Assembly (NCBI GenBank): GCA_965112735.1
Contig: OZ218952.1
Location: forward strand, 2,852,001 to 2,916,000
Direction: 5' to 3'
Origin: Phaeosaccion multiseriatum
Taxonomy: Eukaryota; Protista; Ochrophyta, other classes
DNA length: 64,000 nt
In this document: piece by piece, positions 4,533 through 59,500 of the stretch
How positions within the stretch are numbered: the stretch's first letter is position 1
Layout of the letters: each line of letters opens with the position of its first letter
The notes under the pieces: model-generated
Told to the model about the DNA's origin: nothing
Seen by the model: the letters and a program-made list of their open reading frames with translations, nothing else
Database searches by the model: none
Translations under genes and position numbers: made by a program

Positions 4533-5611
4533 ATCGCAGCTGGCGAGATGGCAGGAGGGGGGCGTCCGTTCGGACTTTCATCACTTGTGCAGCTTGGGTG
4601 ACGAGCTGGCAGAGCGGGAGGGGGGGAGAGGGGGCGCCCGACACTTGAAGCAGAGGCGCACACAGAGAGGGATGACTGGACCGACAGGAGGACAGAAGAG
4701 TAGACGTGTTGGGCGACAGGTTGGAACAAGAGAAAGCATGTTGACCGACAAGAGGGCACAAGAGAGGGACATACTTGGGCACAGGACCGACGCGACGTCG
4801 CGATGGAAGACAGCGTGGTGGTGCTGGTGCTACTCTTGCCTACACTTACGTCTATTGAGGTCTCTACGAGGGGTATACTTTTACGTCTATTGAGGTCTAT
4901 TTCGGTGCCACCGCTCACTTGGGCGCGACGAGCAGCACAGCAGCAGCAGTGGTACAGTGCAGTACAGCAGTTGGTCATACAGTCCCCGTCTCCATCTGAT
5001 GGTCTGTCTGCCTTTGAGCTCGCGCAAGGACGTGACACGCGGGTCGTGTTTGCGTTGCGTTTCGTGTTGCTTCAGTGCACCACCTTTGACCTTTTTGGCT
5101 CCCAGGTCTTATCCCTCGGAGCTTCTAATTCAGGTGTTGATCATCACACTTTTCTCACAACTCATTCATGTGAGCCTTTGACAAAACAACCAACACAACA
5201 AACCAACGGCCCTCCCTCCCTCCCCCCCAGAGCCGTATACTATACAGTGTATAGGGGCACCAAGTTTTGCCGTTGCTCCTTTGTTCCCCATGCACACACA
5301 CGCAGTGCATGCAGTACATGTTCAGTGCTCCTCGAACGCCGTTCCCACATGTCCTGCTCTCCTCTGTATCACCAACTGCTCTGCTCTGCGTGCGCCCCAT
5401 TCTGGCCCACTGTCTCAGCCCTCCCCTCCTGCCTCTGGGGGTCCTTCTGGGGCTTCCTCTGGGGTGCGTCATACCTTCCTTTCTCAAATCTGCTGAGCAA
5501 GGACAGGAAGGAATCCTATGCCTTCAGCGCAGCCGTGCCTGCCAGCTCCCCCCCCCCCCCTCCCTCCCTCCCTGTCTCCTTGTCTTAACTCAAGACGGGG
5601 CAGGAGAATCT

Positions 5612-56505: not shown

Positions 56506-59500
56506 ATGCTGCTGCTGAAGGGTCCTGACTGTGGGTGTAGCAGCGGCAGAAACGGCGGTGAGGAAGCCAAGGAAAGCGCTTGGCTTAGCGGGGTGGAGCT
56601 GCTCGAGCAACACCGGAAAGAGCTTGAGGAGCAGCAGCAGCAGCAGCAAGAGCGACAGCAGCGACAGCGGCAGCATGAGATTAGAGGCAGCAGTCGCCTC
56701 TACGGCTGGAAAGAGTGGCAAGAAGACGATGACGAGGCCTTGGCCCCCTCTGGGCAGCCGTCCCGTCTCCAAGAGGGCGACGAGTCGGAGAAGAAGCAGC
56801 AGCGGAAGAAGCAGCAGAAAGAGGAGGCCCTGAACAACCGAAGTAGGCGAAGAGAGACGTACGAGTCGCTCCAGCAAGCTAAGTCCAATATGTCGCGGAG
56901 TAGGCAGACGCAGCAAGACGACTGTTTATGCCAACCGCCACCAGAAGAGCAGAAGGAGCTGCTGCTGGAGGAGCAGCAGCAGGAGGAGGAGGAGCCCACT
57001 CAACCATTGCCAGGGTGCGCGTTCCTTGCCGAGCTTTCCCAGCAGCGCTCCCTCCACTCCTCTTCGAATGGACAAGCCATCGAGCGTAGGTGGGTCTTGG
57101 CTGCCCGCCATTGGAATCGAAGGGCGTTTTCGAAAGCCATTGCCGCCCTCCGTCGCCACCGTTTGACTGTCTTGGGGAACCGAGCGCATTCCCGGAAAAT
57201 AGCGCGCAGGCAGAGAGAGAGAGGCACGGCGTGGTGCTGGAGCGCATGGCAGAGCTTCGCACGGATGGCAAAGAGGAGGAGACTAACCGACTACACGGCT
57301 CGTTGCTTTGCCACCCGCCGTGATAGAGCCAAGGGGGTCAAGATATGGGCGGCAGCAATGTGCCGTCCCACTCTTAGGGGAGGAATTATAGCAAGCGAGC
57401 GCCATTGCAGCAAGCGTCGTGTGTACACGGCCTTGGTGGAGTGGTGGAGACTCGCAGCGGTCAAGAAAGTGGTCCGCATGGCCTCGGCCCGAGCGGAGCA
57501 GTCGCTGCTACTGGCGAGGCTCTACACAGGCCTGCTTAGATGGAAGGCGGCGACTTCGAAAGGGGGCGACCGAGCGACCTTGGAGGAGGGGGGGGAGAAG
57601 GAGGAGGGAAGTGGGTTTACGGAGGGGCACTTCTTCTTCTCGTCCACAGCCGTGCCCTCTCGCAAAGGAGAGAGTTTGCGTTTCCACCGGGGCTGGGAGG
57701 CAGGCGGGGGGAGAGGCTTGGGAGAGGAGCGTCAAGCGCAGCAGCAAAGCAGGGGCCAGGTATTGGACTCAACTCCTCGGGGCTCACGCGGCAGCAACAG
57801 CAGCAACAGCAGCAGCAGCAGCAGCAGTTGTAGTAGTAGTAGTAGTAGTAGTAGTAGTAGTAGTAGTAACAGCAGTAGTAGTAGTAGTAGTAGTAGCAGG
57901 AGTAGCAGCAGGAGCAGCAGCAGGAGCAGTAGAGGTATTGGTTGTCGCACAGGCCCCCCATCGCAAGCCGCCGTGAGGTCTGGAGGATCCTCTCTGTTGT
58001 CTCCTCCAGAGACGCTGAAAGGGGGCCCGGCGGGAGGGGAAGGGGAGAGGCTGCGACGGAGCTGCGCTTATGGGCAGGTGGACAGTCCTCGACGAAGAGC
58101 AGGGGGTGTGGACGATGAGGGCGACAGTAGGAAGCGTACAGATGCAGTTTCCGAACATGGAGGCGATAGCAGCAGGAGGAGAAGCAGGAGCAGGAGCACG
58201 AGTAGGAGCAGGAGCAGCAAACGCGAGGCCTCTTCTGTAAGTGCTGCGAAGGGGATTGCAGCCCGTATGGCAGGGGCGAAGGGAGAGGAGGGCGGCGGGG
58301 AGCACGGGATAGATAGGGCAGAAGAATTGGGAAGAAGCGTGCTCGAACATGATGCCACTTCAGGCCGCGCTTTAGGCTTGTCTCCAGGAGAGCCCGGCGC
58401 GCACACATGGAGTGAGGCTTCGGTAACATCCTTAACGGACGAATCACCCGAGAGGGCACGTAGGAGATCACTACGAGTAGGAGTAGGAGTAGGAGGAGCA
58501 GCAGCAGCAGCAGCAGCAGCAGCAGCAGCAGTAGTTGGTGATACGGCAGCAGGTTCATCGAGGGGGTCGTCGCGCTCGAGGGCATCTGCGAAAGAGGCGG
58601 CTGCAAGAGACAGCCTCTTGGGTGCTGCTCCCGACGCAGCATGGTGGGTGCTAAATGGAGAAGCAGCAGGGGCAGTCGCTGGGACGACAGGCAGGGGGAG
58701 AGATGGCAGCAGACGGGTGGCCGAGGGCCGACTCTCGGCGAGGTCCGTGAGCCCTCCTTCGAGCCGACGAGACAGGATGCTGGCGTTGACGCGGGCTGGG
58801 ATCGATGCCACAGCGTATAACACTCCTTCTGCAGCTGCGACCACTACTGCTACGACTACTCGTGTTGGATCTCCTGCTCCTCCTGCTGCCGGTACCCTGC
58901 CTGCCCTCCAGCGGCCGCTGTCTGCAGGCGCTCGGAGAAGAGCAGCAGCGTCAACCCCTCCTGGGCCCTCCTCGCCCCTCCTCTGTCGTTCTGCATCCCC
59001 TCTGACGGACTTGGTCCTGACACCGGTTGCTGGCTCCCCTTCCAAGCAGACCAGTCCGAGAAGCGTCGCGAGCTCTCCGGGGGGGCTGTGGGCCGACAAG
59101 GTGCGTGCGTGCATGCGTGCGTGCGTACGTGCGGCGGGAAGGCTCTCCTCGCTTGGTCCGTAGAGTCAATGGTGTTTAGAGTACTGAGGCTTTGATGGCT
59201 GCTTCTGTTCGTCCTCCTCCTCCTCCTGCTACTGCTGCTACTGCTGCTGCTGCTGCTACTGCTTGTGGGACCTCTACCGCTCGCCTCCCACCTCTTTCAG
59301 GTGGAGCTGGGACGGCTGCACTTCAACAGACGCCGCGCGAGACAGTGCCTGTGCTGGCAACAAGAGCACGCCAACTCACAAGCCCGGCAGCGGAGTCACA
59401 GGGTGGCCGTGGCCGGGCGGACCGCTTCCAACGCTCTCGCAAAGTGGTCTCACTTCACTCGAAGTGCGACGAAGCAGCGCCTTTGCGTTCGAGAGGCCTT

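Follow-up and report, generated by a model that had tools for sequence, protein, structure and literature searches.

A short polar sequence cassette dispersed among CAG microsatellites of an ochrophyte alga

The window analysed here, a 64-kb stretch of DNA from an ochrophyte (stramenopile) alga, contains a CFAP65-like gene, other long open reading frames, numerous short microsatellites and a long repeat at 36095-36262. Through it is scattered the 14-nt word AGTTGGTGATACAG, with 7 exact copies and a total of 19 copies at no more than two mismatches (7 exact, 5 with one mismatch and 7 with two; Table 1). Dinucleotide-preserving shuffles of the window, which served as the null for these counts, gave a mean of 0.00 exact copies and 0.40 copies at up to two mismatches, with a largest value of 3. 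Every coordinate and mismatch class in the original prediction was reproduced, and its list of two-mismatch copies stands apart from one that was overlooked, on the minus strand at 30508. This match and the one at 24668 are doubtful members, since the latter belongs to an unrelated tandem repeat and chance alone should yield about 0.4 matches. Three further copies are more decayed, one of them with indels. In a search for dispersed words, AGTTGGTGATACAG was the sole complex word dispersed across the window.

The 7:5:7 ratio of exact, one-mismatch and two-mismatch copies does not fit a single burst, and indicates ongoing copying or homogenisation. Mismatches are unevenly placed: motif positions 2-7 hold only one of the 19 (P = 3.7e-4), so that the GTTGGT core is significantly better conserved than the remainder. 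Partial copies anchored at the 5' end were considered as a sign of directional synthesis and dropped, since AGTTGGT occurs outside the 19 copies at chance level (7 against 5.4 expected); the one sign of a gradient is the mismatch distribution.

Table 1. Copies of the motif and associated features in the window (in acceptor sequences, a slash marks the end of the intron).
Feature	Position	Strand	Context
1-mismatch copy AGTTGGTCATACAG	4969..4982	+	3' edge of CAG-type tract; unique DNA on right
Exact copy	5364..5377	-	Within GCAGA/GGAGA purine tract
2-mismatch copy AGTTGGTGGCACAG	5796..5809	+	
Candidate decayed copy TGTTGGTGGAAGAG	11956..11969	-	Plus strand acceptor-like: (C)n...CCACCAACAG/GTC
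Exact copy	12442..12455	-	Within (AGGG)n array; array phase restored if 14 nt removed
Exact copy	21754..21767	+	Within (AGGG)n array; GTAAGT 5' splice-site-like sequence 23 nt upstream
1-mismatch copy (A9G)	22265..22278	+	CAG array; QLVVQ in 194-codon open frame
2-mismatch match, doubtful	24668..24681	+	Inside unrelated CCTCAACTGGTG-type tandem repeat
2-mismatch copy	26419..26432	-	Follows (CAG)n array; GGDT in 814-codon open frame
2-mismatch match, doubtful	30508..30521	-	Non-repeat DNA
2-mismatch copy	31896..31909	+	Antisense to CFAP65-like open frame
2-mismatch copy	32330..32343	-	AVGDS in 872-codon CFAP65-like open frame
Exact copy	32571..32584	-	CAG array; QLVIQ; public contigs break here
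Exact copy	32808..32821	-	CAG array; QLVIQ
Intron, CFAP65-like gene	33953..34162 (210 nt)	-	GT-rich repeat body; cassette at 3' end
1-mismatch copy (A1T)	33954..33967	+	On minus (transcribed) strand, last 14 nt of intron before final G, ...CTGTATCACCAACAG/GTC
Diverged cassette with indels TGTTGGGGGATACATAG	34299..34315	+	Acceptor ...TGTATCCCCCAACAG/GTG of intron preceding the 33953..34162 intron
Decayed copy, 3 mismatches, TGTTGGTGGTACAT	35369..35382	+	Intron of CFAP65-like gene; unique DNA on one side, perfect (AGGG)n (at least 17 units) on other
Decayed copy, 3 mismatches, GGTTGGTGGAACAG	38894..38907	-	GCA/CAG context
1-mismatch copy (A9G)	39896..39909	-	CAG array; QLVVQ in 1173-codon open frame
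Exact copy	40856..40869	+	Follows (CAG)10; antisense to open frame, AVSPTA in poly-Ala
Exact copy	44210..44223	-	CAG array; QLVIQ in 362-codon open frame
2-mismatch copy TGTTGGTCATACAG	49707..49720	-	Unique DNA on one side, AG-rich tract on other
1-mismatch copy	58533..58546	+	Follows (CAG)12; VVGDT in 910-codon open frame

Every good copy is located within or next to a purine-strand microsatellite, chiefly (CAG)n. The contexts first described, CAG tracts in long open reading frames and AGGG/CCCT tracts in non-coding DNA, were found again. Eight of the 51 CAG arrays (1,043 bp in total) carry the motif, compared with none in 1.6 kb of ACAG arrays, which are mostly one locus, and practically none in 2.2 kb of AGG arrays. 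The CAG strand is the motif strand in all eight cassette-bearing arrays, and the flank on the motif strand is purine-rich in 16 of 16 copies, AGGG-type contexts included. Among words interrupting CAG arrays, TTGGTGATA alone recurs at separate loci; other repeated interruptions, considered as further dispersed words, proved to be local minisatellites. The unit of the cassette is (C)AG-TTGGTGATA-CAG, and it is part of no longer element. A direct (C)AG repeat bounds the motif in most contexts, including the non-array contexts at 4969, 5364, 5796 and 30508; copies in AGGG contexts have GAG...CAG edges rather than a clean duplication, and no CAG tail. On one side, about one third of the copies adjoin sequence that is unique or not CAG (4969, 33954, 35369 and 49707, and in AGGG arrays 12442 and 21754). 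The arrays are short, 10-60 nt.

The cassette also occurs well beyond the window. The motif at 32571 is present without differences in Logan contigs of three runs from one sample (X1, X24 and X4; S1) and of a fourth from an independent sample and study (X5; S2, P2). Public contigs end within about 6 nt of it and are followed by many different flanks, each at roughly single-copy depth, whereas the summed depth at the motif is 356,078 against about 485, or approximately 700 times single-copy. This read depth and variety of flanks support genome-wide enrichment, the lack of which had been named at the outset as grounds for abandoning the idea. Arrays with two cassettes separated by CAGCAG are found elsewhere in the genome, in public read contigs. 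AGTTGGTGATACAG is a real, lineage-restricted nuclear DNA cassette at hundreds of loci or more, and at thousands if the density in the window is extrapolated to the genome.

Searches for a parent element or relatives were negative. BLAST comparison of 400-nt flanks, with low complexity filtered, returned self-overlaps only; no 7-mer is common to more than three flanks on either side, and no copy shares flanking sequence outside the microsatellite. These comparisons show no longer shared unit, and the possibility raised originally, that the copies are fragments of a longer transposon, fails with them. Within the window there is no Rfam match and no tRNA gene, and the cassette has no secondary structure in the five copies folded in context (z of -0.7 to +0.9 against shuffles). 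The 21-nt CAG-context pattern matched no viral contigs; its sole match, in metagenome contig L001, has no microsatellite around it and seems to be a fortuitous bacterial hit. Only distant relatives, with 37-50% identity, came out of the protein searches. No paper with AGTTGGTGATACAG was found in the literature, where its 11-mers and 12-mers turned up solely in unrelated primers and the 11-mer of the cassette was not found as a primer-binding site or tRNA end.

The cassette has no fixed position relative to genes: copies lie in exons (sense and antisense), in introns and beside arrays. The peptide readings initially reported, QLVIQ/QLVVQ, (A)VGDT/VGDS/GGDT and antisense AVSPTA, are correct. Exons carry the same 14-mer in three sense frames and one antisense frame, and introns carry it too, in agreement with the original view that it is the nucleotide sequence, rather than the peptide, that is constrained. 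Five of the six frames are open, and coding arrays therefore tolerate the cassette (QLVIQ, AVGDT, AVSPTA).

In two consecutive introns of the CFAP65-like gene, a reverse-complement copy of the cassette forms the acceptor, ...CCAACAG/GT; the junction of the 33953..34162 intron, after LSFGE, is supported by alignment to the protein P0001. Some cassette copies are, judging from the predicted gene structure, co-opted as splice acceptors in these two introns. The acceptor-forming copies carry T at position 1, and only this A1T variant makes an acceptor; five of the seven acceptors of the gene have no cassette, and most cassette copies lie away from intron ends. A third cassette-type acceptor, at 11964, was rejected because the downstream exon has neither homology nor Pfam support. 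The bodies of the two cassette-ending introns are unrelated (one is a GT-rich repeat, the other contains a 31-nt minisatellite), which does not agree with introners, whose copies are entire introns alike throughout and bring or create both splice sites.

For copies that are real, genome-wide, polar, tied to arrays and without a parent element, two of them at splice sites, the preferred reading, with a probability of roughly 35%, is that the cassette interrupts microsatellites and propagates itself from array to array by templated repair; we infer both the mechanism of copying and its direction. Copying would be triggered by breakage of a microsatellite or stalling of a replication fork inside an array. 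The broken end of the purine strand may then prime on a different array that already bears the cassette, and synthesis would cross the cassette and return via the identical repeat on the far side. Such a process would amount to non-allelic gene conversion or synthesis-dependent strand annealing among dispersed CAG arrays. AGGG-type arrays and array edges may be seeded by rare jumps with only AG ends as microhomology, and the cassette would survive in coding arrays by virtue of its open frames.

Of the two roles first suggested, strict polarity, sharp (C)AG ends and enrichment in CAG arrays fit better with a short insertion copied from a template into one microsatellite after another. The CAG phase is carried through the cassette, as expected if the copied tract has both ends in repeat. 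Imperfect array sequence beside the cassette is shared by the copies at 32808 and 40856 (CAGCAGAAGGAG) and by those at 32571 and 32808 (CCGCAGCAG), and the two A9G copies have CAG..CAACAG..GAAG in common; array variants common to pairs of cassettes are what co-conversion would give. Several observations count against copying between arrays. Arrays of 10-60 nt offer little homology for recombination, and homology on both sides cannot explain the copies with non-CAG or unique DNA on one side. Neutral copying does not predict the avoidance of mismatches at positions 2-7. Were spreading open to any interruption, the window should hold several such words; that it holds only one suggests a specific source, drive or selection.

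A specific source is provided by the possible, though unlikely, alternative that each copy is a reverse-transcriptase patch: a short cDNA of the 3' end of one specific RNA, primed by a DNA break that ends in (C)AG. The template, with CUGUAUCACCAAC, could be an abundant small RNA or the 3' terminus of a non-LTR retroelement that targets microsatellites; about 12 nt would be written, after which the new ...CAG end would re-anneal to the array, in a kind of abortive target-primed reverse transcription or of telomerase-like break healing with a non-telomeric template. One template would explain the single dispersed word as well as its strict polarity and sharp (C)AG ends, and high conservation of the 5' part, GTTGGT, is expected if synthesis begins there. 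By our reading, and as a lead only, the complement CTGTATC-A-CCA resembles a tRNA 3' end and TGGTGATACAG has the form of a primer-binding site, but no paper was found to list the 11-mer as such a site or tRNA end, and the window has no tRNA or Rfam match. Truncated LINE families normally give a ladder of lengths, whereas none of more than 20 copies runs on into a longer 3' untranslated region on either side. Copies are also present in AGGG arrays that have no CAG tail and absent from ACAG arrays, mostly one locus, that do end in CAG. Microsatellite-targeting LINEs are nevertheless established (Waldo, Mino, Kibi, Koshi and Dong; PMC3812793). A related and rather improbable proposal is a dedicated writer, a reverse transcriptase or other templated polymerase with one fixed template, that would add TTGGTGATACAG to breaks ending in (C)AG, in the manner of a telomerase with a non-telomeric template, and leave a stabilising interruption that can be reused, for example as a splice acceptor.

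Selection could act if the cassette were a cis-element, either a DNA site (for example for a Myb-type factor) or an RNA signal for splicing, kept for use at microsatellites in their stabilisation or in chromatin marking; this too is doubtful. Uneven conservation, with a near-invariant GTTGGT, speaks for it, as do the standing of the cassette as the sole dispersed word and the exactness of many copies. The greater conservation of the core means that the cassette may have a protein-binding role; as leads only, the core complements ACCAAC, and CAGTTG fits CNGTTR, the Myb-site consensus. The two homology-supported introns that end in a reverse-complement copy indicate that the cassette is capable of serving as an RNA signal, but the acceptor arises from the A1T variant only and most acceptors of the CFAP65-like gene do without it. 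Copies in so many frames and positions relative to genes, and the lack of secondary structure, also argue against a cis-element. Selection leaves the origin of one 14-mer at hundreds of sites or more unexplained: the change from CAGCAGCAG to TTGGTGATA needs about six substitutions, and a copying process is therefore required anyway. Likenesses of the motif to U6 snRNA, tRNA D-arms and the Chi site were given no weight.

It is very unlikely that the copies are transposon debris, that is, terminal fragments or excision footprints of an element with a CAG/AG target and a 2-3 nt duplication ([CAG]TTGGTGATA[CAG]), since the direct (C)AG repeat around the motif in most contexts, some of them non-array, and the existence of microsatellite-targeting DNA elements (Micron MITEs and MINE-1 Helitrons; PMC3812793) are outweighed by the absence, among more than 20 copies in 64 kb, of any longer copy or any inverted-repeat partner structure, by the lack of a clean duplication in AGGG contexts, and by a cassette that is not palindromic, unlike footprints of two inverted termini. 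A uniform 9-12 nt also exceeds the footprints known for cut-and-paste families. Sequencing, assembly or polishing artefacts and adapter contamination typically show up as a short constant word in repeats that are hard to sequence, but a reading of this kind, which the original prediction had allowed for, is effectively refuted by contigs built independently from four runs that carry the motif unchanged, by the presence of diverged copies, by long open reading frames preserved across copies, and by two copies exactly at homology-supported splice junctions; AGTTGGTGATACAG is not known to match common adapter or transposase-end sequences.

No known mobile element is nearly as short as the cassette. 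If it is copied between microsatellites, no smaller self-propagating sequence would have been described from a eukaryotic genome; it would parasitise simple repeats without an enzyme of its own, and dispersed arrays would trade sequence with one another, with a bearing on the stabilisation and destabilisation of repeat tracts. Were it written by a dedicated enzyme, the process would represent break repair of a new kind. Either way, it amounts to bulk editing of proteins, in which LVI, VGDT or VSPT is put into poly-Gln or poly-Ala tracts of unrelated genes, and by supplying ready-made splice acceptors a neutral or selfish sequence visibly feeds gene evolution. The cassette would, in addition, be useful as a marker of the lineage and a natural reporter of microsatellite repair events.

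Several known systems share some properties of the cassette. The excess of an exact short word (7 copies against 0 expected; about 700-fold depth with many flanks) that is not repetitive and is coding in several frames recalls HIP1 of cyanobacteria and the uptake sequences (USS/DUS) of Pasteurellaceae and Neisseria. These are embedded in ordinary sequence and arise by substitution under drive or selection; the cassette is polar to its arrays, has to be copied en bloc and is present in a eukaryote, and its good copies lie in or beside microsatellites rather than in ordinary unique sequence. The analogy originally drawn, with a protein-binding word evenly spread genome-wide, is not supported by copies confined to microsatellites. 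Interstitial telomeric repeats at repaired breaks and captured retroelement cDNAs offer a model in which templated write-in would give polarity and sharp microhomology ends, but captured cDNAs are heterogeneous and the cassette is one constant 12-mer. Like the stabilising interruptions of disease repeats (CAA in CAG, AGG in CGG), it is a frame-compatible non-repeat within a CAG array; those are single-codon substitutions of local origin, whereas here the same 9-12 nt block stands at hundreds of unrelated loci or more.

Drosophila mini-me/DINE-1 elements likewise consist of many copies of a conserved non-repeat core set between microsatellites (PMC2374699). Their core measures about 90 bp and comes with 13-bp subterminal inverted repeats, a stem-loop and TT target sites, none of which the cassette has. 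Elements that target microsatellites include the non-LTR retrotransposons Waldo (ACAY), Mino (AC), Kibi (TC), Koshi (TTC) and Dong (TAA) as well as Micron MITEs (TA) and MINE-1 Helitrons (GAAA) (PMC3812793). They are hundreds to thousands of base pairs long, with open reading frames, inverted terminal repeats or hairpins, whereas the cassette is 12-14 nt. The 400-nt flanks contain no truncated copies with a common 3' end and variable extension into a body, as expected of Waldo, Kibi or Dong, and a non-palindromic 14-nt motif has none of the terminal inverted repeats, regular duplication and unit of at least about 80 bp of MITEs such as Micron. As with these elements, the cassette is tied to one microsatellite type and always oriented alike with respect to it (8 of 51 CAG arrays, polarity 8 of 8; other arrays are nearly free of it), so that unrelated loci come to resemble one another.

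The 14-mer AGTTGGTGATACAG (the cassette, whose copies are named here by their start coordinates in the window) was found on searching both strands in seven exact copies, the same seven that the original prediction had located, and in 19 copies with at most two mismatches, the two-mismatch copy at 30508 being one beyond the 18 first counted. In 100 dinucleotide-preserving shuffles of the window there were 0.00 exact copies and on average 0.40 near copies (maximum 3), and the arithmetic behind the earlier figure of about 0.0005 per 14-mer under a uniform model is correct. Membership is doubtful for copy 30508 and for copy 24668, which sits within an unrelated tandem repeat. 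The ratio of exact, one-mismatch and two-mismatch copies, 7:5:7, does not fit a single burst. Mismatches are unevenly distributed, with one of the 19 falling within positions 2-7 (GTTGGT; binomial P = 3.7e-4). Apart from the cassette, and leaving aside low-complexity words, no 12-mer or 13-mer in the window occurs at four or more loci separated by over 1.5 kb. It has no predicted fold beyond those of shuffled sequences, and no Rfam family or tRNA gene was found in the window.

The cassette is real and genome-wide, and the observation is confirmed. The locus is present in several public runs of one sample (X1, X3, X4 and X24) and in one run from a different sample and study (X5). Comparison of window positions 30400-36000 with the Logan contigs of X1, X24, X4 and X5 revealed zero substitutions or indels at any cassette: a 1,686-nt contig of X1, also found in X4, spans 30903-32588 without differences and includes copies 31896, 32330 and the exact copy 32571, and an X5 contig spans 32575-32750, likewise without differences, with 10 of the 14 cassette bases and unique flank. 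The summed word depth of the 187-nt bin containing exact copy 32571 is 356,078 in X1, versus about 485 in single-copy neighbouring bins, and 55,018 in X5. Close to the motif, at a distance of about 6 nt or less, contigs stop or fork; the continuations differ from one another, number in the dozens and each have roughly single-copy depth, and there are more than 300 additional loose ends. Such depth and branching are what a word occurring at hundreds of sites or more would produce; extrapolation from seven exact copies per 64 kb gives a few thousand copies in a genome of at least 40 Mb. Several continuations start with TATCACCAACTGC immediately after ...CTGTATCACCAACTGCTG, and therefore some arrays elsewhere carry two cassettes with CAGCAG between them.

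The window (55-63% G+C) encodes a CFAP65/HYDIN-type flagellar protein, an LdpA iron-sulfur protein and a tRNA m1G methyltransferase domain. The protein collection searched has no close relative of its proteins; the best named ones, at 39-46% identity, are from Chrysoparadoxa, Choristocarpus, Ectocarpus and Aureococcus, which places the source of the window among the photosynthetic ochrophytes (stramenopiles). Perfect microsatellites, in 307 runs, account for 13% of its length and are dominated by AGGG (67 runs), ACAG (46), AGG (36) and AGC (21). The CFAP65-like gene has very long poly-Gly/Glu, poly-Gln and poly-Ala stretches in frame between conserved Ig-like blocks, and its introns consist mostly of GT-, CCCT- or ATCCACTGCC-type repeats.

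Decayed cassette copies, readings of the cassette in coding DNA, and other features of the window
Feature	Position	Strand	Description
Decayed copy	35369-35382
Decayed copy	38894-38907
Decayed copy with indels	34299-34315
QLVIQ / QLVVQ	six copies		long open frames
(A)VGDT / VGDS / GGDT	three copies		long open frames
AVSPTA	40856	antisense	repeat tract, poly-Ala
GSPT	31896	antisense	two-mismatch copy
Composite minisatellites	29235-29331 and 23302-23402		(CAGCAG+CTTGCTCACA)n and (AGGG)n+AGAGCGTGTGATGATCAGTCC
Nearly pure ACAG/TCTG-type repeat	13.3-15.2 kb		about 2 kb; AT skew down to -0.64
Dense repeat	36095-36262		short words >12 times within about 170 nt
CFAP65/HYDIN-like flagellar gene	31005-41482	minus	one gene, seemingly >10 kb
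31-nt minisatellite	34306-34558		fills the intron upstream of the exon starting at 34297 (minus); two sub-arrays, 2.7 and 4.4 copies
LdpA (light-dependent period) iron-sulfur protein gene	53515-56006	minus	cyanobacterial type; at least 4 exons; best named relatives brown algae and Chrysoparadoxa

On the motif strand, copies in CAG arrays read GCAGC-AGTTGGTGATACAG-CAGCAG and those in AGGG arrays read AGGG-AGTTGGTGATACAG-AGGG; a few copies lie at the border between unique DNA and a purine-rich array. Of 51 CAG arrays (1,043 bp in total), eight contain the cassette; AGGG arrays have two or three copies, ACAG arrays (1.6 kb) none and AGG arrays (2.2 kb) virtually none. Polarity is absolute: the motif strand is the CAG strand in all eight arrays, and when AGGG-type contexts are counted too, all 16 of the 16 copies have their purine-rich flank on the motif strand. 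Of the words found as interruptions in CAG arrays, TTGGTGATA alone turns up at separate loci; the other repeated ones are local minisatellites. The two composite minisatellites also join a microsatellite to a unique word, in local tandem and not dispersed like the cassette. Whether the copies might be fragments of a longer repeat was addressed in their 400-nt flanks: with the motif masked and low complexity filtered, BLAST returned only self-overlaps, with no similarity beyond the microsatellites, and no 7-mer is common to more than three flanks on either side. The unit is therefore 12-14 nt and not a piece of something longer. In CAG arrays the cassette leaves the repeat phase unbroken, consistent with a net insert of 9, 12 or 15 nt, whereas in two AGGG arrays phase is restored on deleting exactly 14 nt; the apparent unit length thus depends on context, as would be expected of copying with microhomology junctions rather than insertion of a fixed block.

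The motif can be read through in five of its six frames; the exception is the AGC (Ser) frame, which meets TGA. An 872-codon frame on the minus strand (31005-33620) contains three blocks homologous to the Chrysoparadoxa protein, all in one frame and flanking copies 32330, 32571 and 32808 on either side, and these copies are therefore probably translated. Copies scatter over frames, strands and gene parts, and the original prediction was right to place the constraint at the DNA level.

Conversion of CAGCAGCAG to TTGGTGATA takes about six substitutions; repeated origin by point mutation is impossible, and the word must therefore be copied as a block. Of the two roles first proposed, a templated insertion is the favoured one and a protein-binding site the less favoured. 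The preferred reading, tentative and with a probability of about 0.35, is that the cassette may be a self-propagating microsatellite interruption, for which we infer the following copying mechanism. A broken or stalled CAG array would prime on another array already bearing the cassette, and synthesis would cross the cassette and then re-anneal within the repeat beyond; rare events relying on AG microhomology only would place the cassette in AGGG-type arrays or at array edges. Such copying accounts for the preference for CAG arrays, the polarity, the sharp ends inside the repeat, the kept repeat phase, the two-cassette arrays and the excess of exact copies. It also accounts for the few pairs of copies with common imperfect array sequence beside the cassette: CAGCAGAAGGAG adjoins both 32808 and 40856, CCGCAGCAG adjoins both 32571 and 32808, and CAG..CAACAG..GAAG lies beside 22265 and 39896, the two copies with the A9G mismatch. 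Copying between arrays does not explain well why one word alone spread, why a third of the copies have no repeat homology on one side, or why GTTGGT is much more conserved.

A reverse-transcriptase patch from one specific RNA, laid down by abortive target-primed reverse transcription or telomerase-like healing, would also account for there being a single word, for its polarity and for the conservation of its 5' part. The candidate template would be an RNA ending ...CUGUAUCACCAAC(UG) or a tRNA ending CUGUAUCACCA, and the complement, CTGTATC-A-CCA, looks like the 3' end of a tRNA, a candidate lead only. However, no copy runs on into a 3' UTR and the copies in AGGG contexts lack a CAG tail, and this origin is considered unlikely.

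Selection of the cassette as a DNA or RNA signal, to which a similarly low probability is given, would suit the conserved GTTGGT core and two copies at splice junctions supported by homology. In the alignment of P0001, a homologous protein, to the CFAP65-like gene, ...LSFGE matches the exon that ends at 34163 and a 10-letter stretch matches the next exon, from 33952; the intron between them is thus 210 nt long and of phase 0. Read on the transcribed minus strand, this intron ends ...CCCTCC-CTGTATCACCAACAG|GTC; cassette 33954-33967 forms the final 14 nt before its last G, and the acceptor AG arises from the A-to-T change at position 1 of this copy. At 34298|34297 the preceding intron closes with ...TGTATCCCCCAACAG|GTG, one substitution and one extra base away from the 33954 acceptor. 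Five of the seven definable acceptors of the gene have no cassette, which indicates co-option of some copies rather than a general splice signal. A selected signal would still require a copying mechanism, and it fits poorly with the scatter of copies over frames, strands and gene parts. A third cassette-type acceptor, CCACCAACAG|GTC at 11964, was rejected as a look-alike that lacks homology support. The 31-nt minisatellite has units (plus strand ...AGTTTGAGTTTGGTGTGGATACATAG...) with a loose likeness to an expanded cassette, the unit adjoining the exon being the diverged cassette that forms the acceptor; tandem duplication of one cassette copy may have given rise to this minisatellite. The predicted CFAP65-like pre-mRNA contains forward cassettes (32330, 32571, 32808, 38894 and 39896) and reverse-complement cassettes (31896, 33954, 34299, 35369 and 40856), which could pair as 14-bp RNA duplexes, A9G being accommodated through G-U.

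There is a small but genuine chance of a dedicated writing activity behind the cassette, which, if true, would be categorically new. Transposon debris or excision footprints are improbable given flanks that have no common extension. An artefact has a negligible chance, since the depth and the many different flanks rule out assembly or polishing error and the contigs of X1, X24, X4 and X5 carry the motif unchanged.

In the literature searched, the 11-mer and 12-mer of the cassette appear only as unrelated primers. The 21-nt CAG-context form is absent from the viral contigs searched and occurs in one metagenome contig (L001, 1392-1412; 2.3 kb, 56-64% G+C), in ordinary non-repeat sequence; it was taken as a chance match. 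The cassette is a clean, strongly non-random phenomenon, undescribed as far as this search goes. Known mobile elements that target microsatellites include the Waldo, Mino, Kibi, Koshi and Dong LINEs, Micron MITEs and MINE-1 Helitrons (PMC3812793), and a conserved core between microsatellites is known from mini-me/DINE-1 elements (PMC2374699). The cassette resembles all of these in target choice and polarity but, unlike them, has no element body, terminal repeats, ORF or truncation ladder. HIP1 and uptake sequences, to which it was originally likened, are similar only in being exact short words that also invade coding DNA; the cassette, unlike those words, is confined to repeats, and it belongs among the microsatellite-associated dispersed repeats.
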